Below, one piece after another: positions 1,375 through 62,200 of a DNA stretch of 64,000 bases. Origin of the DNA: Hyphochytrium catenoides (lineage: Eukaryota; Protista; Hyphochytriomycota); assembly GCA_900088475.1 (NCBI GenBank), contig FLMG01000171.1:2608-66607 (forward strand), given 5' to 3'. Every line of letters starts with the position of its first letter. The stretch's first letter is position 1. A program made the translations under genes and the position numbers. The notes beneath the pieces are model-generated. The model searched no databases. It saw only the letters and a program-made list of their open reading frames with translations, and was not told the origin of the DNA.

Positions 1375-4300
1375 ATGTTTGGCAGCGCTCCTCGGAGCAA
1401 TGGCGCTTTCCGCATTGGCACGAGAGCTTTCTCCTCGTCATCCGCACTGGGAGAGGGAGAGGGAAAGCTGAACAAGTGGAGCTCAAAGATCACTCAACCC
1501 AAGGCCCAAGGAGCTTCACAGGCGATGCTCTACGCCACAGGACTATCCGAGGCTGACATGAGTGCGTTCTTCTCCTACTTGACCTCTACTCTAGCTCTCT
1601 AGTTGTTGGAAACCTTCAATTACTATCTGTTCGCCTCAAAGCGATATTCTATGGATGCGTTGGCCCCGTCTCCACCTGCTCTGCTGCCATAGCTGGTGAT
1701 AAAGGCTATAGTATGCTCTTTTGATAGACGTGGCTCTAGTATGTTACTTTCTTGGAATTGCTCATTCACTACTTCTAGACAAGGCGCAGGTGGGCATCGC
1801 TAGTGTCTGGTGGGAGGGCAATCCTTGCAACATGCATCTTCTGGACCTCTCTGGGCGTGTCAAGCAGAGTGTGCAGCAGGCGGGACTCATTGGGTACAGG
1901 TTCAACACAGTGGGAGTCAGTGACGGCATCAGCATGGGGACTAGGGGAATGAGCTACTCTTTACAGGTTGGCAGCATCAAGTATCTATCTTCCATAGTGC
2001 AACGATTCTTAAGAGTCCATGTTCTCTTCTTGTCCAAGTCGCCATCTCCCGTAACCTCATATCTACTTCCTCCGCTATCACCTCTTCCCTATGTGTTGGG
2101 TTCCTACTCGCTCGTCTCTCTCGTAAGAGGGAATGAGGACGTGGGCCTCTGGCCTGCAGTGTCCCCCATGTCCACGTAACTTAAAAACTTAGACTTCTTC
2201 TGCGTCTAACGGACTGTCTCTTCTTCCTCTATCCTTGCATCTCCATCTCTCCTCCGCAGTCCCGAGAGATAATAGCCGACTCCATCGAGACAGTAATGGG
2301 CGGCCAGTGGTATGACGGCCTAATCTGTATTCCGGGCTGCGATAAGAATATGCCCGGCTGCGTTATCGCCATGGCTCGGGTAAATCGTCCATCGATCGTG
2401 GTGTACGGTGGCACAATCAAGCCTGGTTGCGACAGCAAGGGAAAGACGCTAGACATTGTGTCGGCGTTCCAGAGCTATGGTGAATATATTGCAGGGAGGT
2501 ACGGACGAGATTTCATTTTTACCTGCTAGCAACAGTTCTGAGCGTCCAAGGGTGGGATTCTTTTTCAGTAGAGCACTTGCTTTCTTTTTGGTTTGTCTGG
2601 CATCTGTGTGCCATGTCGTTTAGGATGTTTCGCTGATGTAGGGCGACCTGGAGCCCATAGTCTATCATTCTCCTCCTTGATGCAATGCTTCCATCACCTC
2701 TCCACTACCTAACACCAATGCTCCCACAAATACTAGAATCACAGAGGAGGAGCGGCAGGACATCGTTCGCCATGCTTGTCCTGGTGCCGGAGCCTGTGGG
2801 GGCATGTACACGGCAAACACGATGAGCTCCGCCATCGAGGCGATGGGTCTCTCTCTTCCGTACAGTAGCAGTGCCCCAGCGGTCGATATGGATAAAGAGG
2901 AAGAATGTGAAAGAGTAGGAAAGGCAATCAAGAACATTCTGGAGAAGGACATCAAACCCTCGGATATTATGACCCGAGAGGCTTTTGAAAATGCGATGGT
3001 ATGCCCGCCTCGGCCTCGGGCTCATCAACTCAAACTGAGTGCCCCTCCCGTGTTTACATGATATAAGCTTGACCAAGGGCTGACTCATTATGAGGCCAGA
3101 GTCTCAGGCCCTTATAGTCTTGTGTCTTCTCAGTAGCTTGCCCTTTCTCATTACGATATGGCCCATTTCTATCTGGTTCTGTAGGTCCTAACGATGGCGC
3201 TGGGCGGCTCTACCAACGCTGTATTGCATCTGCTTGCTATGGCAAAGGCTGTCAACGTCCCGCTAACCATTGATGATTTCCAAGAGGTTAGCAACCGTGT
3301 GCCATTCATCGCAGACCTCAAGCCTAGCGGGATGTATGTCATGGAGGATCTGCACCGGTATGTCACTTAGTGAAAGTAGAAAGCGTTAAGACTGTTTGGT
3401 CTCGGAGTTCTATATTCACTATGTTTACCTGTAGTGTGCCAAGCGCACTCTTTGCTTGCAGCTTTCGGTCTCGAACCAAACTAAGAAACCTCCGCACTTT
3501 CGTCCTCTCCCACCAGCGACGGAGGCACGCCTGCCGTGATGAAGTATCTTCTCGAGGAAGGATTCCTCCATGGTGATTGCATAACTGTCACTGGGCACAC
3601 TGTAGCAGAGAACCTGGCGTCTGTTCCGCCACTGAAGTCGCGGAAGATCATCCACGAACTCAAGAACCCCATCAAGCCTACTGGACACATTGCCATTCTC
3701 AAGGTTAGACATTCAAGAGATAGAGCCAAGGATAAAAGACGATTGAGATCTTGCTTTGGACGACGGATTGAGCTTGGCCGAAAATTTAACTTCATTCTTG
3801 TCTTAGGGCTCTCTGGCTCCAGATGGCGCTGTAGCTAAGATTACAGGGAAGGAGGGCCTTAGATTTGAAGGGCCAGCGAAAGTGTTTGACTGTGAAGAAG
3901 ACATGCTGAAGGGTTTGGAACAGGGCGAGATCAAGAAGGGCCAGGTCATCATTATCAGATACGAGGGACCTAAGGGAGGTCCTGGGATGCCTGAGATGCG
4001 TAAGTGCATTTCCCTTCGATTCGATGTCTAGTCGGTCTTCTTTATTGTGGGCCCGTCGCTACTAAGTCAAAACGTGAGGGATGTGACTAGAGATGAGAAG
4101 AAATGAGAGATTAAGAGCTGGAGCTGGGAAGATAAGTGCGAGCTGTCCTAGGAGTATGACGTCTGGACGAAGAGACAAAGTGCGCAGACGGTCGCTAACG
4201 CTCACTTCTAGTGACGCCAACCTCCGCCATCATGGGGGCTGGTCTAGGCAAGGATGTCGCCCTGTTGACTGATGGGCGCTTCTCAGGAGGATCTCACGGT

Positions 4301-8681: not shown

Positions 8682-10962
8682 ATGGAGTCTTCGGAGCAGG
8701 GCTTAAGAGAAGAGCTCGTCCCTGGTAGCGGCGTGTATCGGGGAACGACCCTTGTGAAGGACTTTGAGGGACACGGACGATTTCGTGGTATTATTACTTC
8801 GTACTGCGCGCCTTTCTTTCGGGTGGAGTATCCAGAAGATGGGGATGTTGAAGACTTGGAGCTGCAGGATGTGCTCGCACTGCTGGTGGGAGGAGAGCAG
8901 CGCCGGGACGTTGAACAAAGAGCCGAGGGAACCCTCCACTATGAGGAAAGGGTGGATCCACCAGCGCTCGCGGAGAAGAATCAGGTGGAGGTGGATAAGC
9001 TGCAACTGCTTAAAAAAGAAGAACCTGGACAGGCTGAGGGGTACGAGTACGAGGAGGACTATTTTGAGGAGAATACCTCAGAAACGGGGGATAAGGAGGG
9101 ATCTACACCATTTCCCTCCAACCCACTCAGCGGTGGCTCTTTAGCTCAGGATCCTCATGAACGACAAAATGAACCGGTTCAGATAGAGCTGAGTGAAGGG
9201 GAGAATGTTCATTGTGGCAGGACGGTGGAACCCACGAATTACTCCGAGGCCTGCAGATCGGAAGCTGGAACAAGTGAACCAAGCCATCGTACATCGACAA
9301 ACGGGCCCTCCCATTCTCTTCCCCTCTTCGGCTCTGTCAAGATGGACAACATAGCCTTAGGAGAGACAGCGAAGCCACTTCCATCTCCTCCAAAGCCTGC
9401 GCAAGCATCTGAGCAGCTTCAAGACCTTCTCCATTCCCTATTTCCTCAGTCATCTAGTGTGCCGAAGCAACGGAAGGTGTATCACACTTCGCCAGGACGG
9501 AGCATGCCTCCAGCTCTTCCGCCTAGTCCAAAGAGGGAGCCCATGTCCCACCTGAAAGTGGGAAAAGAGCGCGGGCGGCCCAAAGCAAACCCCGAGAAAG
9601 ATCTGTACGTTAATGTGTCCTGCTTCGTTGCTATATCAGGGGCTTTTCTGAGACTCAGGTGTCATGGCATCTTCTTCTTCGCTTCCTCTGTTTCTTTCCC
9701 TTAATCAACTCTATCAGGCTGTCCTGCCGTCTGTCTTTCTGACGCTATCTCTTCTCTAGGCCCAGCTTCGATAAGGTGGAGCCCCGTCCTCCATCCTTCC
9801 CCGCGCTTATCGTTCCTGGTGGACAGGAGGACTGGAAGGCTAGAATGAATGTTCATCGGGCACCGCGTAGCCCACCCCCAAAGAACAAAGAAGTCTCCAA
9901 GCCCAGCCATCAGCCCCATAAGCTTGCTGAGGGAAACGTCGCGGAGGAGGAATTAGCTGGAGGGCCGGATGAGACGACAAATCCGAACCAATCAGGAAAT
10001 AAGAAACAAGATCTTGGCGGCCCTACTCTTCTTTCTCTGCGGTACCCTGGGAAGCTACATGAGAGCACCTTGATGGTGTTAGAGAAAGTGGCGGACTATA
10101 TGGACAGACACCACATCCGCCTAATCGACCTATTCAATGGCTCAGAGCACTTCGCTTCCACTTCCCTTAGTGCTCAGGAGTTTAGAAGGCAGCTGAGGTT
10201 GCGCATCGGTCTTCATCTCTCCATGAGAGAGGTGAGACGCTTCCCCTTCAATGCACCTTGTCCTTAAAGAGTCCTTTTATCTTTTCCTTTTACCATTCTC
10301 ACGGTTCCTGAGGAGGGAGGATCAACACGATAACCGTCATCACTTCTAAGATGAGTTTTTGGTCCCATCCTTGCCTTACGCAGGTGTATGAGATAGTCCA
10401 GCTGTTAGACACTAATGGAGACGGAGATGTTGAGATGAAGGAGCTGGAGGTAAGTCAAACACCGACATACCTAGGGTAGGCAAGACATTATTAAGCTTCT
10501 GATGGAAACGACACAAGGAAGCTGCCTAAGACATGCATTAGAGTGGTCTTATTAGTTCTTGGTCTTTCCCACAAGCAACTTCCTTCCTTTGGTGTCGTAG
10601 CTGCCTCTCGTGTCACTCACTCATAATGCCTACTTAGTCTGACGCGTTCACTGTCTCAGATCGCTGTTCGAGAGATGCGCCGTAGAGCGAACGGTCGTGA
10701 GCAGATGAGCTCATTCCAGCAGCTAGCATACGACAGCTTGCAGCAGAAAGTCAGTCGAAAGTATGAGCTTATCTTGGGAATGTGCCAGACACTTTGCGAT
10801 GAGAACGGGGCCTTCGATGTCCAATCCTTCCAAAAAGGTCTAAAGACGTGCGGTGCCGGTCTCTCAGACAGGGAAATCAAGGCGTTCACCAAAATGCTGG
10901 ACCCAGCGCACAAAGGCCTGATTGAGCTGAACACCATTAAAAACTGCGTTGTCTTTAGATGA
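8682..10962 (+). CDS. Hypothetical protein: N-terminal Tudor-like domain, long disordered linker, C-terminal EF-hands (exons approx. 8682-9604, 9760-10231, 10384-10449, 10660-10962)
   Basis: 340-aa first ORF; canonical EF loop LDTNGDGDVEMKELE; degenerate loops DENGAFDVQSF and LDPAHKGLIE. The 3' end is uncertain. Confidence 0.7.
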
Positions 10963-25310: not shown

Positions 25311-28176
25311 CTATCTGGAGTTCTTCACGGCGTCGAACAACTCGGTGGCACGCCTAGACACCTGTGACGTGCAGCGCCGACATAACAATTAACAGGCAAA
25401 AAAAAAGTTATAACTATCTCACTCAGTAAGCGGAGAAGCAATACCGTAGGAGAAAGGAGGAGATCCGGCATAGCGGCAAGATACCAGCGGACATACCTCA
25501 GCCGGACTAAACCCTGCTTTGTACAGAGATGATCCCAAGCCGAATGACCTTGCCCCAGCTTTCATATATCGTGGAATCGTTTCAACATCAATGCCGCCGA
25601 CAGGCAGCATAAGGGCGTCAGAAGGAAGCACTAGAGGAAGAGCATGTGGAGCAATGACTGTTAGAAATAAAGCACGTGGACCTTAACAGCTAACGCCACT
25701 AGGAGGCACCACCAAGTACAGGCTACTGTCCGCTGTGTTGAGTACTCCCACCTGTCTTGAATGCCTTGAAGCCTGCAACGGAGATCATCTCAGCGGGAAA
25801 TAGCTTCAGCCCGTGGGCACCTGCTTCTAGCGCTGCAAAAGCCTCAGAAGGTGTGGTGACACCAGGCAACATAATAAGTCCCCTAGATACGGCAGCTGCC
25901 ACCACATCAGGATTAAAGTTTGGGGAGACAATGATAGCTCCACCGGCATCAGCTACTGCGTGGACCTATTTGAGATAGACGAGAGCCCGATCCGATGAGT
26001 TGCAGAATTTAGGAGGATTCAATAACCAGTCCTCATGAGGAAAGATGTAACAGCATTCAGAAAGCGAGCCAGAGTAGCCGTTGTAGACACGCATGGAGGA
26101 AATGCAGCAGCACGATGGCCTGGAGATTGCTAATCCTAAGATTCTGATTCGCATCTCCATGACAAAGCTTCGAGAGGTAGTGGCCATGTTGAACAAGCAG
26201 GAGGATGGCATAATGAGGTCTTCCGCGTAAAAAGACTAACCTTCTCCACGGTATCAATTGTCCCAGCGCCTATGAGCATTGAGTCACCAAACGCTTCTTT
26301 CATGGTACGGATGCTCTCAAGGCAATTTGGAGAATTCCAAGGAACCTCCACGATGGAGTAACCCGCGTCATGGAGTACAGAGCAAACAGATCGGGCTTCA
26401 GAGGGTTTGATCCCTCGTAAAATAGCAACTAGAGGGCATCTAGCTAAATGCTTCACCAGCAGATCTTTGGGCGATGAAAGGGTAGAAGCCCTGCTTTCTT
26501 TCTCTTCCTTTCTAGACGGTTTGACAGCAAAGCCCGCCAAGGATAGTAAGCCCTTTCTGGATATCTCCTCCCCATTCAGAAGGACTGGTTCAATGTTCCA
26601 AAGTTGGAAGGCTTGCTGATAGAGAGAGAGAAGAGAGTCTGAACCCACTACTGCAACACCAGAGGGAGGACTCAGCCTAAAATTTTTCATGCCCGAAGAC
26701 ACCTCGTGGCCGATGACAATGCCGGACAGAAGGGACAGAGAGCCCGTCTCGTCCACCTCTTTAGCCAAAACTCTTCTCCGCACTTGAAAGAGATCGGCAA
26801 GAAAGCCATCGCGACTCTGTTTAGCGATCTCAACACCCTTCCGGAACTCCTTCTCCTTGACGGGGCTGCTCGTTGCTTGAGCTGCATTCACAAGTAGCGC
26901 CAAGGAGGGATCAATGCAGTCAGGTTACAGATGCGAGAGGGTAAAAAACAGCCAAACTTAGAAGATAATTTGACTTGAAGATCCATAAGAAGGAGTCTGT
27001 AAATCAGAGGTACGCACCTGGGCGGAGAATGGAGTGCTTCGAGATGATAGAGAACATCTCGCCGGTCATGTATGTCTTGAAATAGTTCACCTGCTGCGCA
27101 GCTGGGTCGATGACAGCCCATTTACTGTGAGTGCCTGTATAGGAGATCATCAGTTTCCATTGTGAATCAAAATGGAGCCTGCCATACTAGGAGACTCTAT
27201 TTCCACTCTCCTTTTCCTTTTCCTTGCCATCGTCATGTCATTTCCCTCTGTTTTCTTTTCATTTGTTACTCCGCTTGTCCCTAGAACTATTCTAAATAGC
27301 GGTTAGAATAGTCCTGCACTTCCGATCTCAGGTATGAAGCTTCTATCCTTTGTATTGTTTGTGCCAGCAGCGGTTGACTTACCAGGAAGAATGATTAAAT
27401 CCGCCGTGATGCCTTGGTCGTTCAACATCTCTAACGCACCAAATATTTGCGTCTCTTCGCCGCGTATGACATCCGGGGCTACCTGCTGCCCTTCATTGTA
27501 AGGTGTTGATTGACTACACGAGAGGCCGGAGAAAATGGTGATCGATCGCCCAGATTTGGATGTGAACTTCTCTGCCTGAGCTCTGACATTCTCAGCCGTA
27601 GCCGGCACTGATGCATACTTAACCTCCCTCCAGCCTCTATTGGACCCTGCCTGAACTCGATCCACTCGTCAGAGAAAGCACGGGCTCGGCGAGTTCGGTT
27701 GCTTACCATCCCGCATATAAAAACTGGTGCGGTGCGTGGCCAGTCTCTGCAGTGCGATTCAAACGCCTCGTCAAAATCCTTCACGTTCAGTATGCCGCCG
27801 CTGTTGCTGGAAACACTATCAATGACAGTGCCATCTGGGACATGCATCACTATGTAAGTACCAGTCTAATTGCTAAGACGTGTTCTCCATGTCCCATGTA
27901 GGCTCGTAGTGCTAGAAGGATTGCCATTAACCTCTTACCGTTGACGTTAACGTAGAAGGCACGGAAGGAAGAGGTGCCCCAATCGGCGAGGATGGCTTTG
28001 TTATGCCCGGAATTCTCATGAGGACCTGACGATGCCATTCTCACGATCGACCGGATTGGTGGCACGGTTGGTCTATAGTTTGCAGCGCAGCCGGACCGTC
28101 CACTTGCATATACAGACCGCCCAGACGCAAGCATACGCCGAAGTCCAGGAGGACAGGGTCTTATAGCGAGTGGCAT
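25311..28176 (-). CDS. Fused 2-dehydro-3-deoxygalactonokinase (DgoK) and 2-dehydro-3-deoxy-6-phosphogalactonate aldolase (DgoA), 8 exons, with N-terminal extension
   Basis: DgoK motifs DWGTSSFRAF, CGMAGSNRGW, DVIRGEETQIFG, LPGTHSKW, MTGEMF and LSGIVIGHE. DgoA motifs LVAILRGI, EVPWNSP, IGAGT, VSPN, PGVTTPSEAF, LKLFPA, PVGGI and FGLGSSLYKAG. The junction lies within one ORF (26136-26903). Confidence 0.93.
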
Positions 28177-30744: not shown

Positions 30745-31098
30745 CTAGTATTCAACGGTAGAACCCGGAATTGCGTCCCTGCTCTTGGTGATGATCTCCT
30801 CAATGGTGTGGAACTTGGTCTTGCTCATAGGTCTGCAGCTTCTGATCTTGACGAAGTCACCTAGAGTGAATAGAAACCTAAGCTTCACCAGCACTACGTA
30901 GCCAAAACCACAAAGGAAACTCCACAAGAAAACTGACTTACCGAGCTGAGTGACTTCGTTCTCGTCGTGAACCTTGAACTTCTTTTTGTACATGATTGGC
31001 GCGTGAAGCTTGGGGTGCATTTGGCTTCTCCGAACCTCGACAACAGCCGTCTTGGCCATACCTTTTCCAATCACTCTCCCAAAATAGAACGCCGTCAT
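30745..31098 (-). CDS. Mitochondrial (bacterial-type) ribosomal protein uS17, one intron (about 30862-30941)
   Basis: GRVIGKGMAKTAVVEV, HPK, KKFKVHDENE, GDFVKIRSCRPMSKTK. Confidence 0.9.
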   Translation of the reverse strand: MTAFYFGRVIGKGMAKTAVVEVRRSQMHPKLHAPIMYKKKFKVHDENEVTQLGKSVFLWSFLCGFGYVVLVKLRFLFTLGDFVKIRSCRPMSKTKFHTIEEIITKSRDAIPGSTVEY

Positions 31099-31782: not shown

Positions 31783-32667
31783 ATGGGGTCTCTGCACCGA
31801 ATCATCAGGCCTATACTTCCTCAAGTCCGAGGGCGCTATGCTGCATATGCTCAGCCTTCCACCGGCGATGCTGACAGACTTCAGTATGTGGTAAGAGTGA
31901 CGTCCCACACATTGCCTAGTTGACTCCCCCGGTCACCAGTACACCTTATAGGCCCGACTGGCTGTCGGTACGAGACTCTTCAGGACCTCGCCATCTCTCT
32001 TGGAGATGTTGATCATGAAAGTACCAGCGATGGGTGACTCGATTACCGAAGGGACGCTCGTCCAGTTCAACAAGAACCCTGGGGATTATGTGAACCAAGA
32101 CGAAGTCATATGTGTCATTGAGACTGACAAGGTACGAAGCTTAAGCTCTCCGTAGTTTCTTGCCTTTCACAACCGTTGCCTTGCTGATAGGTTAGCGTGG
32201 ATGTCAGAGCACCACAATCCGGCACTATCGTAGAATTCATACCAAAACTTGACGAAGAAGTCGCCGTGGGTGGTGATCTGGTCAAACTGGATACTGCAGG
32301 ATCTGCTAAGAATGTACCACCCTCAGAACCCAAGGCAGTGTCGCCTCCAGCTACTCCAAGCCCTTCTTCCATTGACTCAAAGCCTACACCCCAAGCAGAG
32401 AAAGCCAAGACTGTAACAGAAGTAAAGTCGATAGGGCACCGGGTACCAAGCATCAAATTCTTAGGTAAGAGGTCAAAATCGAAGACCTCTTCAGGCCTGG
32501 CCACCAGTGCCGGCCAGCTGTCAATGGCACGGTCACCGCTTCCTAAGGAGGATGTGTCACCTAAAGGTGCCATTCCCTTTGACGACACTCCTTCTCTGTT
32601 CAAACATCTACCTTTGTCGGCGGAAGAAATGGAGGCAATAGACTCTGGGGGTGCCTCAATGTTTTAG
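31783..32667 (+). CDS. Predicted mitochondrial protein: E2o-type lipoyl domain plus Kgd4/MRPS36-like module (exons 31783-31890, 31952-32131, 32191-32667)
   Basis: Presequence ...GTRLFRTS; lipoyl domain [12 protein letters not shown]...[16 protein letters not shown]; Pro/Ser linker; [12 protein letters not shown]; C-terminal [19 protein letters not shown]. No acyltransferase domain. Confidence 0.85.
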
Positions 32668-32747: not shown

Positions 32748-33972
32748 TTACACCCATACTTTGACACTCCCGTCGTATGCTCCTGAGAGAAGCATAGTTT
32801 GCGTCGGATGAAAAGCTGCGCTATTAACGATACCCTTGTGCCCAATAAGCTTGGTAATGACATTGCCCTAAAGAGACCAGGTCAGCATGTAGCTTCGTCA
32901 GCATGTCAAGCTTGAGTCCGTACCTCAACAAGATCCCAGCAAAAGATGCTGTTGTCTTCGGAGCCGGAGAAGACATAGGCATCATTATGGGAGAAGCATG
33001 ATTGGACCCGATATGAGTTATTCAGATGCCCTACATACCTGGACACAGAGACCACGTTAGGCCTTCGTCCATTGAACTCTAAAGAGGCGGACAGAACTTA
33101 CTCGGTGAGCAGCTCCCCCGAGTCCTTTTCCAGAAGTCTTATTCTATTGTCTAGACCATTGGCTAGAATGCAATTGCGGTCGTTCGAAAGCTGGACGCTG
33201 CACACGCTCTCATGGATGTTGTCCGCAAACACCTTTCCCATACGGAGATCAAATATCCGAACAAACCCGTCAACTGAGCTGTGCCGTGTAGCCGCGTCAG
33301 GACGTGGCGTCATACTATGAGCAGCACTGCAAGAAGGACTCTGTTACTGACCTTGCAATGATCTGGTCCGCAGTCACCACGATGCCTGTGACGCTATCCT
33401 TGAAGTGGTCCAGGATCTGGATAGGCTCATAAGAATTCTGGGCACGAACGTCCCAGCATCTTATGGTTTTGTCATAAGAACCGCTAAGGATCACAGTCCC
33501 ATCAGCGTTCATGGCAACAGCATTTACACGGTGGAAATGTCCTTGAAAACGCCGGATAACTTTCCCTGTGGCGACATCCCATAAGAAGACTATTTTGTCT
33601 CCTCCGCATGAGACGAACTTGGCATTGTCATGAGAGCTAGACAAGGTTCCATTAGCACTATCGAGCCCAGACAATCCTCTCAAGTCGACGCCTTACATGA
33701 CCAAGTCTTGGATCTCATACCCATGTGGCCCACTGTATGTCTTCACCAGGAAGCCCTCCTCCCCGTCGGGCCCTTCGCGATGAGGGTTCCAGAGGCATAG
33801 CCTACGATCCGAACCTCCGGACATGCAATAGCTCCCATCACCTAGATTTCCAGTTAGGCTCCCTCCCTCTCTCACGATACCTACAAGGGTACTCACCATT
33901 AAACTTGACAGCCAGCACGGCGCCCTGATGGCCCCGTAGCGTGCGGACATTTTCTCTCGGAACACCTGACAT
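32748..33972 (-). CDS. WDR83: WD40-repeat protein WDR83/MORG1
   Basis: MSGVPRENVRTLRGHQGAVLAVKFN, LCLWNP, YSGPHGYEI, SCGGDK.VFLWDVATG, SGSYD, SVDG.VRIFDLRMG, RLLEKDSGELL, SGSED, AYDGSVKVW*. Confidence 0.92.
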
Positions 33973-34635
33973 CGTCAGCAAACGTGCACTATGGTCCTTA
34001 CGGCGTGGGCCGTATCAACTAGGCCCATCTCACCCTTCTACACAGAGAGGAATTGCACTGCGAGCTGAGCTTGTCACAATTGGCTATGGTCCTCCATTCC
34101 CAGGCTACTAAGCCGGCAAATGATCACCTCCTCCCGCGGTGCAGCTCTTTACAAGGGACGCTGGCAGCTGGCAGGCTGAATTGTCCTGTCAATCTCTTCT
34201 GCACTCTGCACCGATGATCCATCATCAGATCATCAGAAGCCAAGGAATCGTCCCACAGATCTGTGTACGGAGAAATCCACGGCCATAAACGTTAGCGGCA
34301 CCTTTGAAGAGTTCCCGGGTCTTCTTCACACTTTCAAAGACTCCTCCAGGCCATTCTCAGACAGGTTTCCAGCTGATGAGCTCGGTCACTCTTGAAGAAC
34401 GGGCTTGAGCTGTGGACTACTGAGACACTTTTGATACTGCAAGGTGTCGAAGACTGGTGACCTTTCACATCTTAGGGTCTCAATGCTTTTGCCTTCTCCA
34501 TCATCCTGATAAGCGCAGCTTCCATCGAGCGCTGGTGTCTGCTATTCATCATTGGCAACCTCTTGGAACATCTGTCCTACCATGCAAAGACGCTCTCCTT
34601 AACGTTTCGCGAGGAGAATCTGTTTGACTCGGGAA

Positions 34636-42847: not shown

Positions 42848-45800
42848 CTAAGCCAACAGGTCTGTGACGTCCGCATCTGCAAAGTCGTCGTCCTCTACCA
42901 CTGTTCAGGTCTACAGGTTAGCAGATGCCCGAACCAGCAAGAAGAAAGCAGCCCTTACCTGGCTTCGCTGGCTGTTGTGCTATCTCTGGCCTTTTGCTAG
43001 TTTGCGGGCGGACCATGGGTGCTGGCGCCGTAGCTTTTGTGGGTACTGGCGATTCGGCCTTCTTCTGTGGTGACCCATTTTCCATGGTCATGCTTTGAGA
43101 GTGCCGCTCCGGCGAGGTCGGTTCAACAGGTGAGGGCGTTCTTGAGGCGTTAGCATCGTCGTCTGCTTGAGGGCGAGCAGGATAGCCTGTTCGATCCAAA
43201 CAAGCCGCAGAATGGTCTGTACTTTCCAAACACACGCTTAAATGTAACGCGACGTGAAACATACCTGGTGCTGTTACTCCTTGAGTCTTAGAGGCCACAA
43301 CTTTCTCTAGCTTGACAAGCTGCTGCTGAAAGTGGTCATAAGGCTGGCCAAGATCTTTGCAGATTGCAACCAAGTAGCGAAGACCTTCGTGAAGGGTAAG
43401 CCAAGTCAGAAGGAATTCACCATGGAGTGGATGCGAAGCAGCGTCATAAGTGAAGAGAATGCGAGGGTGTGGAAGTAGCTACTGACGGACGGACCATTTA
43501 TATAAAGGTTCTAGAAATTAGAAGAGACAGAGAGGACAAAGAGAGAACTGGTGGAAAGACGGCAGGGCCAAAGATGTACCGATAAGCCAAACCCATCTTT
43601 TTAAAGGTGGAAAGGAATATTTGGACTGGCTTCCACTTACATTCAAGATTTTCGGGATACTCCTTATGGATCTCTTCATAGAGCTGCAGGGCCTTCTGAT
43701 AGTTGCCCATCCGACGGTAGCAGCTTGTAACCATAAGCTTCCATTTCACTTCCTGTGGCTGAATCTCACTGGCCCTATGGAAGAACTGGATGGCCTTCTC
43801 ATAGTACTCGCTCTTCACATACCAGACACCCAGCCACGATATGACGTCTAGGTTAACGGGGTATTGTCTATAACTCTCTAAGTGATAGTGGAAAGCCTGA
43901 CTTTCGTCTTCGTCCTTGTTGAATATCTGTACCAGCGGGAGAGTTTTAGAAAGTGGCCTCGCTGGAGGACAGTCCACAGCCCTTGCATCAGGTAGTTAGC
44001 ATACCTGGCCCAGCCTTGCGAGAATACCCGGATCGGCGACTGCTTTGTTGGTAGCGTAACACGAAAGAAGAATGTTGAACCACTTCTCCGCTTGCCGATA
44101 GTTGCCTAGCACATCATGTAGGTGTGCGATCTGTCATAGTACGTGCGGAGAGAAGATCAGACAAAAGGAAATCTACGAAGTTGGGCCCTGCTTGTTATTC
44201 TGACCTACCTGGTAGATCACCTCTGTGTTTGTGGGGATGATGCTGTGCAACTTTTCAAATGCCTGCAACGATTCGTTTACGATGCCCATTCGCTTGTTTA
44301 CCAATCCGAGATTGTAGATCGCCTCCACGCAATCCGCTTCCACTCCGATAGCCTCCTACACAGTTAAGGATTAAGCCACCCTGACGCCATCATCGCAGAA
44401 AGAAAGCTGGTCACGCACCAGGAACAACTCCTTTGCCCTCTCATAGTCAGAGTTGATATACAAGCAGTTTCCTTTGTTGACTAGTGCCTGGGCGTTGTAC
44501 CGATCGTGCTTGACAGCCAGGTTAGCATACTTGTCAGCCTGCATGTAGTCACCCTCTAAGAAATAGAGGAAGGATAGGTTTGTCGCTGCCATGGCCTGAA
44601 GGGTTGGGTCTTTCTTTTCGAACGACTTGAGAACCTCGATGGCCTAGAATTACACCAGCGTCATGAGAATGATTAACTCTATTGGAAAAGTAACAATCCT
44701 CCTAAGCGCTCGAATTTGCCGAGCTACCTGTTCGTAGTCTTTTTGCTTCAAATAATGCAGGGCCTTGCAGACCTCCAGTTCTGAGGCTATCTGCTCATGC
44801 TGTTGCTTCAGAGCTTCAATAAGAATATCGTATCCTGCAGCCCAGTCCTGCCTGTCGAGGGCCTGTTCCCCGCGGACGCGCATGACGCAATCGCTTAGTC
44901 AAAGATTCACATTTGGCACATCTCTCCTTTCTTTTCCTCCCTCTCGAGTCTCTTACTAAGTGCCCCTCTCGCGGCTCAGCTCTAGCCTTGTATGTCCCTT
45001 TCGTGCGTACCGGTGCAATCATTTTCGCCGCTGTGATAGTGTAATTTTTTGTCTGCAAAGGTCAACGAGCGTCATGGGAGGGCATGCAGGATATTACGAA
45101 AAGTTCTCGCAACGTACAATTTTCTGGCGCTCCTTAAGCTCTTGCTTCAGGCCATCTGGCTTCAGGTCAAGAAGAATATCCTCTTCCGCTTTCTTTTGGT
45201 CCTCTTCTTCCTCTGCAGCACCCTGGGCGCACATGCAAGCAGGAATAATACAACTCGTAAACTGAGTCACATTCCTTTGTCTAATAGGTTAACACTTACC
45301 GGCACGGGAATGCTAAGAAGCTTTGTAAAGCCTTTTCTCATTTTCTCGGCATCTCCCAGCGCATAGTAGCAAATTATGAGGTTGAAGCCTGCCTGGAAGT
45401 CGCCTTGTCCTTTCTGATCCTGCATGACAGACTCAAAAGATTGGATGGCATCTTGAAATTGTCCTAACCGCACGAAGGCTATTCCAATGTTCCTCATAAT
45501 CTTTAACCGGAGTTCGTTGGCTGTACTTGGTATTTGATCTAACGCCATTCTGTACATCTTGATGGCATTGGGATACTTCTTTTGTTCAAAGTAGATGTTC
45601 CCCATGTTGACTCGGAGACGACCTGGTAAGTTGAGAGATTAGAAGGGACAAATATTAACAAGGTGAAGCTCCACGAACTTCCCACGTCAGAAAAGCAGAG
45701 AGCAAGAACGAGGGAACCCGCTCACAAAGATCGTGGCAGAGTGGGAGTAGGTAAGATTGACAGACCTGCTTGAGGATACTGCTTATTTTTCACAATGGTC

Positions 45801-49250: not shown

Positions 49251-51442
49251 ATGGACGAAAGTAACGTCAGTCAGCGAGCTATGTGTGGGCAAAGTGGGAG
49301 AGCGGCCCCCGTTGTCCGAGTGCTCGATACTTCTTCAGCCACCAAGAAGGTGTTGAGGAGGCCCCGCCCCTCAACCATTTTGAAGGTAATGGATAACCTT
49401 CTTTCCTTGACACGTTTGGGAGCTTCGGGCTAACCTTTGGACCAGGGTCATCGAGGAGTATCAGCCGCCGTACCCCTATCAAAGGCTGGAGAGAACGAAG
49501 TACCAAACTCAATAGAGGCTCGACCTGTGGACCAGGGCCGAGTCTTTCTGAGGAGATCGAAGGAGAAGTGGGAATCCCAGCGGCATTTGCGAGACACGAC
49601 AACGGGCCCAAGAAGCACTTCCTTAGGCCACAATAAACCAGTTGAAGTCGCGCTTTCGGGACAAGTGAAGGTAACATATTGTCATTGTAGGTTTCATGGT
49701 ATGGCATTAACGGCTAAAACAACCTAGCCACAGAGACAGTTCGGTCTGAGTCAAGGCCATTTGCAGACCCCTAAAGAATCAAACTTCGGGTTCGCATCAG
49801 ACCCACATGTCTCTTCCTCCTCTGCTTTGCCTTTTGCCGGGCCTGCTATGGGTACCGGAGCAAAGTCAAGAGTTGGTTTCCGTCAGCGTTCTAGGGAGAG
49901 ATGGATGAAGAGCAAAGAACTTCGAAATGTTGATGAGCAATTGCGACTTGCAGAGGCTTCAAGTGAGCCTTGGACAAAACCGATAAATACCAGCGAGTTG
50001 CAAAGCAGCGGTAGCGCAGAGTCTCGTCCTGGGCAGGTCAGAGTCAGAGAGTTCTCTCGATTCTTCTATTCCTTCCTCTTGGCAGATGCCTTCTAACTCT
50101 AGTACAGCCTGGGGACATGACGCAGCTGCTCGACGACTCGCTGAAGCTGCAGTATGAGAAGACTCCGACTAGAGAGGTAGATAATAACAGAAGCTCGGTT
50201 GACTCTGGGCTTGAGGATCGCAGCCGAATGGCACCTGGGGAGTTCCCGCGAAGGAAAAGGTAACTTGGCCCCTAACTAGGTACCACATCTCATCTAACCA
50301 GGATTGGACTAGCGCCTACCTCAAATGGCAGGAAACCCGCAGTCTGCGAGATGAGGGTTCCGCGCTCTACTCAAAGTTAACCTTGCTGGACGCGGGAAAC
50401 GAGAAGCCATCTCTGACTCAACAAACTTACAAATCGCCCACAAATGAATCTTCTCCTGAATATTGGCGGGACAAGCTCACTGAGTTTTATGCCAAGCATA
50501 ATCCTTCCAAATTAAACTCAGTAGAAAGCGCCTTGAAACAATACGCAGGTCGCTACGAAGAAATGTGGAAGAAGCTGCAGGAAAAATATCTTGGCCCAGG
50601 GTGCGTGGATGCTTTCGTCAAATCACGCGATGCTAGGTATCGATTTCTGACCTCTTCGCTAGGCTGCTAGCTCAACCCCGCAAATTTATAACTTCCGAGC
50701 GGCACCCACGAGTCTTCATGGACATCTCCATAGGAGGGCTAAGAGCGGGCCGCATAGTTATGCGCTTGCTTGACGATCAAACGCCATTGGCCGCAGAGAA
50801 CTTTCGCTGTTTATGCACAGGAGAAAAGGTTAGTAACCTCTCCTCCGTTAATTAGCCAGATTCTGACTACCTCCATAGGGACCACAACTTTGCTACAAAG
50901 GGAGTCGTTTCCATAGAGTGATCAAGAACTTCATGGTTCAAGGAGGAGGTACGAGATTAGCGCTTGCTCCAACAGCCGTGAACCAGGGGACATCTTCCCT
51001 CTGTCTATCTCACGCCCATGTGTTTTGTGTAGACATCACGAATGGGGATGGCACCGGTGGCGTGAGCATTTATGGTGGAACAGAGCATGGAGACCTATGG
51101 GGCAATTTCAAGGATGAGAAGTTTCTCCCTCACGACTCAGCAGGGCTGCTATCGATGGCCAATGATGGTCCCAATCGTAATGGTTCCCAGGTATTGATGG
51201 ACCTCTCTCTGTTGCGTCTAGCGCCATCTCACTTATCTTATCTTCCGTCCATACTGCAGTTTTTTATCACAACCAGATCCTCCCTCTCTCATCTAGATGG
51301 GAAGCATGTGGTTTTTGGAGAGGTTACTGAAGGGCTTGAAGTGGTTGACAAGATGCAAGGCGTCACGGTGGGAAAGAACTCCATGCCCACGCCGGACGGC
51401 GCCATTGTGGTGGAAGACTGTGGCCAACTTACATCTTGCTAA
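49251..51442 (+). CDS. Multidomain cyclophilin-type PPIase with long disordered N-terminus and a small helical domain; start uncertain
   Basis: [77 protein letters not shown]. Confidence 0.88.
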
Positions 51443-56200: not shown

Positions 56201-59200
56201 GTGGAGAGTCAGGGGTAACCTGGGTCACTATCACTCAGCAGGTGGCGCTCAGTAAAAGCTTTGGAAATGCCTTTGCCGCTCTCGTTGCTCGCGGAGGAAA
56301 TGCCGGCTCACTCCCTGCGTTGCTAGAAAGCAAAGGAGTTCATCACTCATTGTCCGCGGCTGTAAAGATTTGTCGACTTGTGCTTCTTCAGTCATTCTTC
56401 CGCGGGCTGCACTCTGCTAGCAAGCAAGTGGTCAACTGCAATGCAGGTACAAACTTTCCTCAGGCTGTAAATTCATTGAAGACCTCCCGCTTTGAATTCT
56501 TCCTCCTCTTCGTTGGTATATGGACTGAAACTATTATGTTAGTTCGAAGGATTTTCCAGTTGATAGATCCACACCTGAAGCCATCTGAAATTGAGGAAGA
56601 GGCACTCTATGCGGAGTGCGAGGTGTCACTTGCCCGATTGACCGCGGTAAGTGCTAACTCCACTGTTTTTTTTTGTTCCCAATCCTGCTTCTCTACCCTA
56701 TATTGCGTCGTCTGGTCCTTCTGCTTAGTGCTTGTCAGAGGGCATGTCTGACNNNNNNNNNNNNNNNNNNNNNNNNNNNNNNNNNNNNNNNNNNNNNNNN
56801 NGGTCCCTTCACCATAAATGGAGTCCTTTTCCGCTTGGATTTACAACTTTCTCGTGCCTTTCCTTTTGCCTTGCGACTTTCCTTACGGTTCTGTTTCCGT
56901 AGAATTTGAGGGGTGTTATGAGTACTGTGAAAGAGGTCTTACAAGGAGAATACCAAGCACTGGCCGCTCTTGAAGAGCTCGAACGTCTTGAGCCACATTG
57001 TGTGACGCTTCGGAAGTTGGGGGCTTTGAGCGAAGCGCTCAGAGTATGCTTAGGAGATATCAAGGGCAAGCTAGAATCAGGTAGGGTTCTTTCTATCGTA
57101 GCTCTCGAAGTCCTTACCCTGACAACTAGATACGATAGTCAATTTGAACTTCCATTGCTCGGTTAAGGCCACTCTAAGGTCACTCATTGCCTCGAATCAG
57201 TCATCCTGCCACTCTCGAGAGCGGAAAGCCCGTACTTGGCTACTCTGATGTACTGTACCTTATCAAAACTTTTTTTGGTGCAGACCGTCTCATCTATGTC
57301 GCTCAAAGAATTGAGAACATAACAAGTGCGGGAAGAGAAGTTGAAACTCTGCAGAAAACGCTAGGTTTACGAGTCGAGGGGTTGGCAGCAGCCGCGTTAG
57401 AGTCTGCAATAAAAATTCCCCTATCGCCCCCCTTCCTGCCTCTCCCCTCCTCCTTGAATAGCCTCATACGCCCGCTCATGAGTCTTTTGAAGGCGGAGAA
57501 GGATAAAGCTCTGTTAAGGTGCTAAGAATCTCTCCACGTGTCCTTTACCTCCTTCGATGGATTTGGTTGGTGTTAGTCCACTCCCTTGTTTGCTGCATTG
57601 CCCTCCTAATCGCATCATTGGCAGCATTGTCGGTGACAGCATTGCAAACCTAAGTCACAAAATCATGCAGTTCCAAAAGAAGGTATGTAGTAGTAATCTC
57701 TGGGCAGTCTTCTTCCCTACCGATGGCGCTGCAGGTCGTAGGCCTCATTTTCTTCCTCTTTGCTCGGTCCGCTCTCCTTTTCTAGGCGAATAACAAAGTG
57801 AACCGAAAGATATGCCAAAACCTATGTGCCTATGCCCTGCACAAATCTCAAGACAAAGTTGAAGGTAAAAGGTGTAAAAATGGGGTCGTTGTTCGCCAGA
57901 CCTATCTTCCCGCTTTGATTTTTGAATAAGCACTTCCTTTCCCTATCATTCGGATGGGTTCCAAAATCTCGTGGATGGCTAGATAGTAAGCATGGGGGAG
58001 AACAAGGTCTCCTGTCAATGCTAAACCTCTATGGAGCCAATCTGCTGGAACAAATGCCCTTGCTAAAGGACTCACTTCACGGAAAAATGGAGGTGATCTA
58101 GGATTAGACCTGCTAACCCCTTATAACGCACTCAAAGCCACCTCCGTTCTCCACACATTGTTCCTTTTTCTTTAAATATCTTGCTTGGACTGGCTAACTA
58201 CGACGTTATGTCCGCTGTCCGACTACTTGGCCGATTCGGGGTCGAGCCTTCCGGGGTTACCTTGCCTCTTTCAATCTTTGATCCCTCCTTCAGACATGAT
58301 TATCTTTATCCGATGCTTTTTAACATAGTCGCTTGGCATCGACCACGGCCTAGGGCTTCACCGACGAGTTACGGCTTCGTCTCCTACTGCTGCTACTATC
58401 TCACGCGTCTCCGGAGGAGGCACAGCAGGTAGCTTAACGGCTCAGATATGTGCCTGCTTCTTGTTACACTACTGCCACTTTCTATAGAGGTAGGCTTGAC
58501 TCACTCCGTATTGGCAGTTTCGTCCCCTGGTCAAGCCTCTTCTGGAGTCCTTGAATGAAGAATTAGACCCTGTGATTCTCAGGTACTGTAACTCTTTTGC
58601 TTTGATGAAGCCGTTCGGTCTCTCTATCTGCGTCTCAACTACCTCTGTTGTCCTCTGTTTCTTTCTTACCTACTGCCAGACATTGACATCTGGATCACGC
58701 AGGCTGACTGTCGAAGCTCTGAAGTACGTTTGGACGACAGACCGAAAGTCTTGTCGAGAGATGTTCGGAAGAGCTATCACGGCTACCATGGACGCTTCCG
58801 GTACCGTGCTTATTCTATGCTAACGTACGCCATTTGTGGTTTCAATCTTGCTCGGTTTCTATCACTATTCGACCCATCAAGTCTCTCGCCATCCAAGGCC
58901 CCTGGAGCTCTGCTCTCTGCTCTGTTTATCTTTCCCAGGCCGGCGTAGCATCTCATCCCTATGCGCTAGTTCCTCAATCGCTGTAAACTTACCATCATAT
59001 ACACAGAGACATCAGGACATTGTGTCCAAACTAGGGTTAATATGTTGATGGTTCTAAAAGAGCTTGTCTCCGTTCCTTGGGAGGCTGAGGATATTGAAAG
59101 GGTTCTGCCGCCGGCTCTCCACCTTTCGCTTCTGTCACTGTCATCGGCTGATAGGCACTGCCGACGGACTGCGGCGTTTACGTTCTCCGCCCTGGTGCCC

Positions 59201-62200
59201 TTTCTCTCCTCGTTGCGACACAGCCTAAGCACAGGAGAGTTGATGCTCGGACAAGGACCCAGCATCGGCTTCTTGAAGGGACTTTTGGAGCCACAGCTCT
59301 ATCGATGCAGTGACGGGGAGTTGAAAGGTGAAGTTTCCTTTATCGTGCCCAATGTCATATGCACCTCACTCTCTAGAGACCCTCCCGGTGCCTATCATGT
59401 GGTTTCATGGGGGTTGATTCTTACATTGCGGAATACTTCATATCTGCTTGCTCTAACGTTGGCCTCTTTTCCAGAGTTATTAGGAGAAGTGTTTCAGGAT
59501 AAGATCAAGCTTAGACCTTATCAGAGGGAGGGTATATCATGGCTCCTCTATCTGCAAAAACACGGCCTGCATGGCGCTCTCTGTGATGACATGGGGCTGG
59601 GTAAGACAGTTCAGGTTAGTCACAACCAGCTCTATGGTGGGTTATAGGCTGCCAAGCAGGCAAAAGGATTGAAGGACACACCTGATGAGAGTAGGGCAAG
59701 CTGTTCAGGTGACGGCAGGGGTATTATCTATAAAGTCTGCAACGAGTTCTAAGGGCCAGTCAGATCCTCAGTGCAGGGTGGCAAGCTCGTAAGCATCTGG
59801 ATTGAAAACCAACGCTTAGCCTTTCGTTTGTAACCTTTAGGTTCTCTGTGCAGTCCTCGCTCGAAAGCGAAGCTGCGAGCGACAAGGAAGGAAGACCCGT
59901 CCGAGCCTCGTCGTGTGCCCTGCCTCAGTGGTTGGCCACTGGCAACAGGAAGTGGTGAAATTTTTTGCTTCCATTCTTACTTGCGAGGCGTTCAGGGGCA
60001 CAAGGTATGCACAAGAGGCAACTAGTATTACCGGCCTACCTCGCCAGTCGAAATGCCAATTCATTAAGCTTCTTGGTTCGCCATCTTTCCCTGAACCATA
60101 GTTGTTAATCGTACGCGAAACTTCAAATCCTCGGACGTTGACTCGATTATTCTACTTTTTCCTCCAAAGCTCCAAAGCTACAACTGCTCGCGGTCGTGAG
60201 AAGACCTCGTTCCCCTTTACTGAAACGAGGGAGGTCCCTGACGTGCTGGTTTGCTCCTACTCTATGCTCTGCAAATACCAAGTGGTATTGGCTAGCCTCC
60301 GCTGGTGCTACTGCATTTTAGATGAAGGTGTGAAGACATTTTATTTTTCGTTCTCTTTGGCCACCTGGCGGGCACTTTTTTATTGCTCCTTGCTGGGCAA
60401 AGTCATCTTTACTTCATACCTTGCGGGTGAAGAGGTTCGACCAGAACAGTCAAGCTGTTGTCTTAATCCACCTTCCTACTCTTTCCAGCACACCTAATCA
60501 GAAATCAGAGTACAAAGACAGCACAAGCAGCTTTCTCCCTGGTGGCAGAATACAGGCTTGTCCTAAGTGGAACCCCAATACAGGTAGCCACAGAGGCCAT
60601 GCAGTTTTTGGTATGCTAGAGAGAGTGGCAAGCGCTTGGGCCATAGGGAGACCATGAAGACTTAGGTGGGCGGCCCTGGACTCCAACTTGATAACTACCT
60701 TCCTTGTGAAGGAGAGCCCGGTCATAGAATTTGGGGCGGATTGAGAGTCTTCAGAAGAGCAAATGACACTTTCTATCCCTAGAACAATGTATCTGATCTT
60801 TGGAGCCTCTTCGAGTTTTTGATGCCGGGCTACCTTGGGGACCTCAGTAGCTTCCGTGCCCAAACGCTAAGGAAGATATCACTGCTTCGCGGAGCTGGAA
60901 AGTTTAGGACCTCAGGAGTCTTAGATGAAGGTAGAGTGGACGTTCAGTTGACATTAGTTATGGTGATTTGGCCCACTTCGCATATCTCATCTGATCCACT
61001 TTCTATGCCTTATTGTGAACTTTACCCGTCAGGTTCGTTGTCTGCCTATTGAGCAAGATGATTTGTTTCTTAATCTATCAATGGCCCATCCTTACTCCCT
61101 TTCCCTTATCGTTTATAGGCTTCCAGGCTCTAGAACAGCTGCATGGGACTGTTTTGCCCTTCATATTACGTCGCTTAAAGAGTCAGGTACTTAAGGATCT
61201 ACCACCCAAGATCATTCAGGATGTGCGTTGTGCACTTTCAGGACCTCAGGCAAGCCGTCATTTGCATTTGGTTCTCTCTGTCCCTAGCTTACTCCCTCTG
61301 CCTATCGCCACCCTTTTCGGATTTACTACCTCACAGGAGGAGCTATATAGTGCCGTTGTGAAGGCGTTCACTGGGAGGATGGAGAAAAAGGACTCCTCTC
61401 TAGGTTCCTTCGACGCACTGAGGCTCTTGCGCAAAATCTGCATTCATCCGTTGGCCTATCTATCTGACCCAAAGGTGAAGTCTACAACGACTGCCTCGTC
61501 GCTTCCAAGAACTGTAAGTCTACCAAAGGGAGAACCAAGGACGAGCTTAGAGCTCTCTGGAAAGCTTATTTCACTCAGGTACGTATTCTTGATTGCTTGT
61601 ACGCACGACGTATAATCCATGGAGCCGGCTCTCTCTTCTCTATTACTCAGGGACATACTCTTGCAGTGTGGTGTCGTAAAGTCCTCTCTCCTTGAGGTTC
61701 CTGCACATCGCTGTGTCATCTTCTGTCAAATGTTCAGCTCCTTAGACATCATAGAAGACTTGCTACTGAAGCCAGACAGCGTGCCGTATCTTAGGCTCGA
61801 CGGTATGGCGGAACATGCTATGCATAACGAAGGAATTGTTAGGGGAAAGTGGAACAGAGTTCAAGGACGGTTAATGAAGCGAGGGTCTGGGGAGGCTATG
61901 TAACACAACGTGGGGGCTAGTGAAAGCATACATTTGATGTTACCTGTTGACAGGGAAGTGTACTAGCGCAGCGCGTACTGCTCTGATCGACCGCTTCAAC
62001 TCTGATCCCTTCATCACGGTGCTCCTAAGCACGACGAAGGTGGGTGGTCTTGGGATCTCCTTGACCTCGGCAAATACGGTTATATTCGTGGAAAGCGACT
62101 GGAACCCCTTCAACGGTAGGTAAAGTAGCACATGGATGAGATAATTAGCCGCAGTGGGTGGGAAGAGCAGTGACAGGGATAGCAGGGTGCGGCTAGGTTG

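Follow-up and report, generated by a model that had tools for sequence, protein, structure and literature searches.

The gene at 31783-32667 of the 64-kb stretch of DNA analysed here (the window) probably encodes the organism's orthologue of Kgd4/MRPS36, the E3-tethering subunit of the OGDHC (2-oxoglutarate dehydrogenase complex), in a form that carries its own E2o-type swinging arm; we put the probability of this reading at about 0.78. The OGDHC has a fourth subunit, Kgd4/MRPS36, which was recognised recently, is linked to disease and has been described from fungi and animals as a small adaptor devoid of domains. For the protein encoded in the window, import into mitochondria, lipoylation, membership in the OGDHC and catalytic use of the arm are all predicted.

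The gene comprises three exons on the + strand with a product of 254 aa, and the coordinates that a first-pass annotation had given for it proved right. Among the donor and acceptor pairs tried in a frame test, a single splice combination (31890|31952 with 32131|32191) was open. The features of the gene are as follows:

31783..31890, + strand: exon 1, predicted from the open reading frame listing and the splice test; the ATG and the first 36 aa, Arg-rich
31891..31951, + strand: intron 1, 61 nt, GTAAGA...TATAG; its acceptor is the sole one that leaves the frame open
31952..32131, + strand: exon 2, the end of the presequence and, from 32015 on, the first lipoyl half
32132..32190, + strand: intron 2, 59 nt, GTACGA...GCTGATAG, placed by the frame test
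32191..32667, + strand: exon 3, the rest of the lipoyl domain, then the linker and the Kgd4 tail
32191..32295, + strand: first part of exon 3, the second lipoyl half, ending in ...GGDLVKLDT, from alignments A1 and A4 and tblastn
32296..32436, + strand: linker, flexible, rich in Pro, Ser, Ala and Lys, about 45 residues
32437..32472, + strand: N-terminal Kgd4 motif, 12 residues, from the alignment to fungal Kgd4
32566..32664, + strand: C-terminal Kgd4 block, 33 residues, from the alignment to fungal Kgd4

The final 19-residue stretch of the tail lies at 32608-32664, and the stop codon occupies 32665-32667. Both introns are of the GT..AG type. Exon 1 is required because an in-frame TAG is found directly upstream of exon 2; with its start codon and presequence, it appears to be the least certain part of the gene model. 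The presequence in this exon is Arg-rich, its first acidic residue is D29, and we regard it as a putative mitochondrial targeting peptide. Exon 2 ends with the codon for the lipoyl lysine of ETDK (32129-32131), and intron 2 interrupts the lipoyl domain immediately 3' of this lysine. The spliced second junction reads ETDK|VSVDV, identical to the consensus of all relatives. Matches to stramenopile E2o in tblastn extend from 31955 to 32134, break, and then run from 32191 to 32331; the break and the restart at 32191 give independent support for this junction. RNA coverage of the region consists of one 164-nt contig from a soil metatranscriptome (32276-32442), which lies inside exon 3 and spans no junctions. 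The contig suggests that a close relative of the source organism lives in soil. It differs from the window by one base change and by an in-frame 3-nt deletion at 32363 in the Pro/Ser linker, and the deletion suggests that the linker tolerates in-frame changes in length. In all remote searches the exons of the 254-aa protein were queried separately, or its homologues were used.

The first-pass annotation had recognised a complete E2o-type lipoyl domain with the lysine of the lipoylation motif, and the profile searches bear this out. Exon 2 matches the Pfam model Biotin_lipoyl (PF00364) with 39.2 bits against a cut-off of 22.1, the same model matches 48 of the 48 relatives, and the T-D-K residues and their flanking glycines are invariant in every one of them (48/48). 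The best NCBIfam match for exon 2 is sucB (TIGR01347), which is also the top match for three of the four relatives tested, including those from Naegleria and Colpodella; for the Phytophthora protein P0004, a pyruvate-type E2 model scored slightly above sucB. The sucB models (TIGR01347 and NF004309) reach 43-89 bits against cut-offs of 378-449, with the match limited to the lipoyl domain and the linker, and the lack of the catalytic part is the reason why these scores fall so far under the family thresholds. When the PDB sequences were searched with a profile of 32 fused lipoyl domains (A4), the best single-domain matches were E2o chains (9njt with 113 bits, 7q5q with 95 bits), whereas eukaryotic E2p entries reach about 85 bits only by summing two domains. 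The identity to the lipoyl halves of stramenopile E2o is 49-65% in tblastn. In a tree of the lipoyl domains (78 columns), the fused domains and those of stramenopile E2o are intermixed with unsupported forks, and only the bacterial sequences are separate; the columns are too few to decide between one ancient duplication and fusion on several occasions. The AF2 model of the homologue P0006 has a lipoyl barrel with a pLDDT of about 96, a floppy linker with 56-64 and a short C-terminal E.E.EA helix with about 80. The Pro/Ser/Ala linker seen in the first reading of the sequence is indeed present ahead of the Kgd4 tail, and in the alignment it is variable and of low complexity in all relatives.

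An alternative explanation is that the protein works not in the OGDHC but in another complex of the 2-oxoacid dehydrogenase type (branched-chain, 2-oxoadipate or pyruvate), or that it is a lipoyl carrier free of any complex. Some relatives are named 'lipoamide acyltransferase component of branched-chain alpha-keto acid dehydrogenase', lipoyl domains resemble one another across E2 types, and the tree of these domains does not resolve them. However, the branched-chain names stem from automatic annotation, sucB is the best model for exon 2 of the window and for three of four relatives, and the best single-domain PDB matches are E2o chains. In addition, the only partners shown for Kgd4 are the Kgd1-Kgd2 core and E3 (PMC4214781, PMC9974300). 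We therefore consider membership in another complex very improbable.

The assignment to Kgd4/MRPS36 comes from the tail, in which both motifs of this family had been noticed from the start, and here Pfam, tail-profile, hhalign and language-model searches all agree. Exon 3 matches the Pfam model Kgd4-YMR31 (PF10937) with 27.2 bits, above its cut-off of 22, and the match covers positions 13-116 of the 116 in the model. The C-terminal motifs thus fall within the Kgd4/MRPS36 profile, and the two models expected for a lipoyl-bearing Kgd4, this one and Biotin_lipoyl, are both matched above their cut-offs. The match of the window tail itself is modest (27 bits), and the strong statistics derive from family profiles; among the relatives, PF10937 is reached individually by 24 of 48. 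In the N-terminal motif, which aligns to H.PLIKFLGPR of fungal Kgd4, the I and F are invariant and the P, G and K nearly so (29-48 relatives). The C-terminal block aligns to LP..Y.R.P.T.EEIEAIE.GGA of fungal Kgd4, and its S/T..E.E.I..GGA motif ends the protein, with the stop codon directly after it.

A tail-only alignment (A2) of 29 sequences, which start five residues upstream of the first motif, was turned into a profile and searched against 1.84 billion cluster representatives. It found 859 matches at E<=1e-3 and 226 at E<=1e-10, and these include lipoyl-fused as well as stand-alone proteins. Among the top 150 matches, 39 are fused according to a local lipoyl HMM; many of the remainder are fragments that lack their N-terminus but retain the last part of a lipoyl domain, and others are true small proteins with a presequence immediately ahead of the first motif. 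The named stand-alone matches are a 'ribosomal protein S36' from Basidiobolus ranarum, a protein from Calcarisporiella thermophila and a cluster-mate from Piptocephalis. These three small proteins are canonical fungal Kgd4, and the tail-only profile recovers the named fungal proteins at E ~1e-12. When the fused tails were compared with fungal Kgd4 in hhalign, the alignment covered 76 columns and both motifs with a probability of 99.4% and an E value of 4.1e-21, which places the likeness far beyond chance. A language-model search with the 81-aa tail of the window retrieved Kgd4-YMR31 clusters from Arthropoda (0.93, with 220 features in common) and from Streptophyta (0.91). Taken together, these four kinds of match establish the homology of the tail to Kgd4/MRPS36 well. 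A profile search of the PDB sequences for a solved structure of the tail returned nothing meaningful. The possibility that the tail is a degenerate PSBD was also considered and rejected: hhalign against bacterial PSBD segments gave a probability of 0.04%, and PF02817 matched in none of the 48 relatives.

What the two parts of the tail may do can be carried over from yeast and cattle. Pull-downs with the N-terminal part of yeast Kgd4 recovered Lpd1, which is E3, and those with the C-terminal part recovered the Kgd1-Kgd2 core (PMC4214781); cross-linking of the bovine complex is consistent with these roles (PMC9974300). By analogy, the N-terminal motif of the window protein would face E3 and the C-terminal motif the E1o-E2o core.

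The gene lies between two neighbours on the minus strand, a gene for ribosomal protein S17 upstream and a WD40 gene downstream. Because the genes on both sides are on the opposite strand, the lipoyl-Kgd4 gene is unable to extend into a catalytic domain. A search downstream and elsewhere in the 64-kb window for a catalytic 2-oxoacid_dh domain found none, and tblastn with E2o detected the lipoyl halves only. This agrees with the original observation that the protein has no succinyltransferase domain, and the transcript is not expected to continue into one.

These results bear on the possibility that the gene is a truncated or decaying copy of E2o (DLST), or that the gene model is an artefact that joins two neighbours. 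Many relatives carry the public name succinyltransferase, and the sucB models do match the N-terminal third of the protein. However, the second lipoyl half, the linker and the whole Kgd4 tail are encoded in one uninterrupted exon, and MMETSP and TSA entries show the fused layout on single transcripts; in Naegleria lovaniensis the fusion gene is one uninterrupted, intronless genomic ORF of 879 nt. Conservation of the two motifs and of the lipoyl site extends across supergroups, the sucB scores of 70-89 bits stay far under the cut-offs of 378-449, and the window holds no catalytic remnant. We regard this explanation as effectively refuted. Oomycetes, moreover, keep a normal 405-aa E2o (P0110, P0112) beside the fused protein, and the coexistence of the two indicates that the fused protein is an additional subunit and not a damaged E2o.

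Several other genes were recognised in the window. The S17 ORF (30745-31098, minus strand) matches Pfam Ribosomal_S17 with an E value of 3.9e-19 in two stretches, which suggests that it is interrupted by an intron. It is the immediate upstream neighbour of the lipoyl-Kgd4 gene, and the two are transcribed in divergent directions; the ORF may encode a mitochondrial-type S17 that has its promoter region in common with the gene of another mitochondrial protein. On the other side, facing the 3' end of the lipoyl-Kgd4 gene, is a convergent multi-exon WD40-repeat gene (32900-34000, minus strand; matches to WD40 and to WDR5/Prp19-like propellers), with about 230 nt between the stop codon at 32667 and the last exon of the WD40 gene. 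An exon at 26139-26903 (minus strand) matches DGOK (2-keto-3-deoxy-galactonokinase) with an E value of 1.5e-18, followed by a match to KDPG/KHG aldolase that is below the gathering threshold (21.5 against 27.8 bits). Further exons belong to the N-terminus of a dihydroxy-acid dehydratase (1721-2176, plus strand), a PTM/DIR17-like Tudor domain protein (8682-9701, plus strand), a TPR/ANAPC3-like protein (43501-43977, minus strand), a cyclophilin (50918-51439, plus strand) and an SNF2-family helicase (59042-61612, plus strand). Only 3 ORFs in the window exceed 220 aa, which suggests that the genome is dense in introns.

The fused layout is widespread. It occurs in oomycetes (Phytophthora, Pythium, Peronospora, Saprolegnia, Aphanomyces and others) and in other stramenopiles, namely Cafeteria, the brown alga Pylaiella, the diatoms Nitzschia and Seminavis, the eustigmatophyte Nannochloropsis and a chrysophyte, as well as in many transcriptome and metagenome entries. 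Outside the stramenopiles it was found in the alveolate Colpodella angusta and in the heterolobosean Naegleria lovaniensis, a member of the Discoba. In the Atlas, the Naegleria protein scores 0.96 with a diatom cluster and with a cluster of 60 members in which the commonest phylum is Chlorophyta; Chlorophyta as carriers of the fused form are a lead only. The protein collections searched have no entry for the window protein itself, and its closest relatives there are only about 30-40% identical. The carriers of the fused form found here are thus stramenopiles, Colpodella and Naegleria, and Kgd4 in its stand-alone form is present in fungi, arthropods and land plants. A fusion specific to one lineage, one of the two origins first envisaged for the gene, is refuted because the layout is present in stramenopiles and also in an alveolate and a heterolobosean.

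Two genomic contigs (L001:4001-4267 and L002:1537-1815) also carry Kgd4 genes that consist of a presequence and the tail only. Their tails are 44-52% identical to fused tails of the chrysophyte type, with which they have the block G.GVDF..L..GA..GRP in common, and a search for a lipoyl exon in the 1.5-4 kb upstream of them found none. These genes are evidence that the lipoyl domain has been gained and lost between fairly close relatives, and the distribution of fused and stand-alone forms as a whole, these two included, shows that the architecture was altered more than once. With the fused form in Discoba and SAR and the unfused form in opisthokonts and streptophytes, the ancestral state depends on the position of the eukaryote root.

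The second origin first envisaged, that Kgd4 is the trace of an E2-derived ancestor or E2 duplicate, is compatible with the E2o-like lipoyl domain and is possible but unproven. The same architecture in many protists means that the small adaptor of animals and fungi may be a cut-down form. Taking this further, we tentatively entertain the idea, to which we give somewhat less than even odds, that the lipoyl-bearing form is ancestral and existed at or near LECA. It would then have been an E2o-derived, catalytically dead, E3-binding subunit of the OGDHC, the counterpart of E3BP in the PDC, and the small Kgd4/MRPS36 that animals, fungi and land plants have would be the remnant left after several losses of the lipoyl domain. 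If this were the case, MRPS36 would be given an origin, the ability of eukaryotic E2o to lose its PSBD would be explained, and the solutions of the OGDHC and the PDC to the recruitment of E3 would be parallel.

The recruitment of E3 to the E1o-E2o core by Kgd4 has been shown for the yeast, mouse, bovine and Chaetomium proteins (PMC4214781, PMC9974300, PMC10203282). Pig-heart OGDHC preparations contain little or no KGD4 (PMC11436768), and the stoichiometry of Kgd4 in animal OGDHC, and even its constancy, is debated. For the lipoyl-bearing protein of the window we propose that the presequence would be removed after import and that the ETDK lysine would then be lipoylated. The C-terminal block would dock onto the E1o-E2o core, and the first tail motif would hold the E3 dimer. 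The lipoyl domain, on its flexible linker of about 45 residues, would serve as an extra swinging arm that could be reductively succinylated by E1o, discharged at the active sites of E2o and re-oxidised by the E3 tethered on the same polypeptide. The logic of such an arm is that of the lipoyl domain of E3BP in the eukaryotic pyruvate dehydrogenase.

A different role for the arm should be considered as well. The protein could be an E3 adaptor of the OGDHC whose lipoyl domain is a structural anchor or decoy, docking in the lipoyl-binding site of E3 or E1o and strengthening or regulating the binding, with no transfer of succinyl groups to E2o. The study of the Chaetomium OGDHC proposes that surplus 'unloaded' lipoyl domains anchor on E1o and E3 (PMC10203282), the canonical E2o in the relatives already provides lipoyl arms, and the lineages with a stand-alone Kgd4 show that the domain is dispensable there. 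However, the conservation of T-D-K and the surrounding glycines without exception extends over very distant lineages, as expected if the lysine is modified and used, and in the tree the domain is indistinguishable from the lipoyl domains of E2o. We therefore think it unlikely that the domain acts as an anchor or decoy, and we favour an arm that takes part in catalysis.

Automatic annotation was predicted to call such a protein a truncated DLST, and the names given to the homologues from Phytophthora, Nannochloropsis and Seminavis agree with this. The Phytophthora homologues of 205-227 aa are listed as 'dihydrolipoyllysine-residue succinyltransferase component...' and the Nannochloropsis homologue as 'dihydrolipoamide s-succinyltransferase'; the Nitzschia homologue is a 'dihydrolipoyl dehydrogenase', and elsewhere the name is 'Lipoyl-binding domain-containing protein'. 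Some database entries (P0177, P0141, P0146, P0181 and P0233) are mis-modelled, with long nonsense N-termini or with the lipoyl domain cut off at an intron, and naive counts of architectures from gene predictions will in consequence under-report the fusion. A search of the full-text literature, which leaves most subscription journals outside, found no description of a lipoyl-bearing Kgd4/MRPS36. The lipoyl-bearing form is thus apparently new, though not certainly unpublished, and the proteins themselves are already in the databases under misleading or empty names.

Recognising them would correct a systematic misannotation as 'succinyltransferase' or 'lipoyl-binding protein'. The adaptor with a conserved, E2o-like lipoyl domain is found in crop-pathogenic oomycetes, diatoms, an apicomplexan relative and Naegleria, and an additional lipoylated mitochondrial protein is predicted in the protists that carry it. 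With this family, the worth of a second kind of swinging arm could be examined in a naturally occurring 'E3BP for OGDHC'. The family would also make the origin of MRPS36 tractable as a choice between an E2o duplicate and a later fusion, and would provide compact constructs, with a lipoyl domain and two linear motifs in one chain, for structures of E3 on an E2o core that lacks a PSBD.

Among known systems, the closest is Kgd4/Ymr31/MRPS36, with which the window protein has both blocks in the same order and at the same spacing, R/H.P.IKF.G.R first and then LP..F/Y.R.P.S..E.EAI..GGA at the C-terminus. However, the Kgd4 proteins described so far have about 80-130 aa and a presequence alone ahead of the first motif, whereas the protein described here has 254 aa, and in it that motif follows a complete lipoyl domain and about 45 residues of linker. 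Published surveys place the Kgd4 family in fungi and animals, or in 'eukaryotes', and leave a lipoyl domain unmentioned (PMC4214781, PMC9974300). The likeness to E2o (SucB/DLST/Kgd2) is that of the lipoyl domain, which is 49-65% identical, intermixed with E2o domains in the tree and best matched by the sucB model. It differs from E2o in that the catalytic acyltransferase domain is missing and the Kgd4 tail stands in its place.

The order of a lipoyl domain, a flexible linker, an E3-binding element and a core-anchoring element is that of E3BP (PDHX, protein X), and the fused Kgd4 resembles E3BP also in being a non-catalytic extra subunit beside a full E2. E3BP binds E3 via a folded PSBD (PF02817) and joins the core via an inactive 2-oxoacid_dh domain (PF00198). 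Searches found no PF02817 match in the 48 relatives and no PF00198 match in the exons of the window protein or in those relatives. The fused Kgd4 uses two short linear motifs instead of the PSBD and the core domain, and its lipoyl domain is E2o-like, not E2p-like. Of the three defining features of E3BP, then, the lipoyl domain is present, and the PSBD and the 2-oxoacid_dh-like domain are not; the E3BP layout proposed in the first-pass annotation stands for the lipoyl domain and the order of functions, but not for the PSBD fold or for a core-forming, catalytic-like domain. To judge by this domain composition, the protein resembles E3BP only by analogy, in its layout, and is not a member of that family; it seems best filed as a variant of Kgd4/MRPS36. 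Skalidis et al. gave Kgd4 the nickname 'E3BPo' on functional grounds (PMC10203282); the lipoyl-fused Kgd4 family makes this analogy physical.
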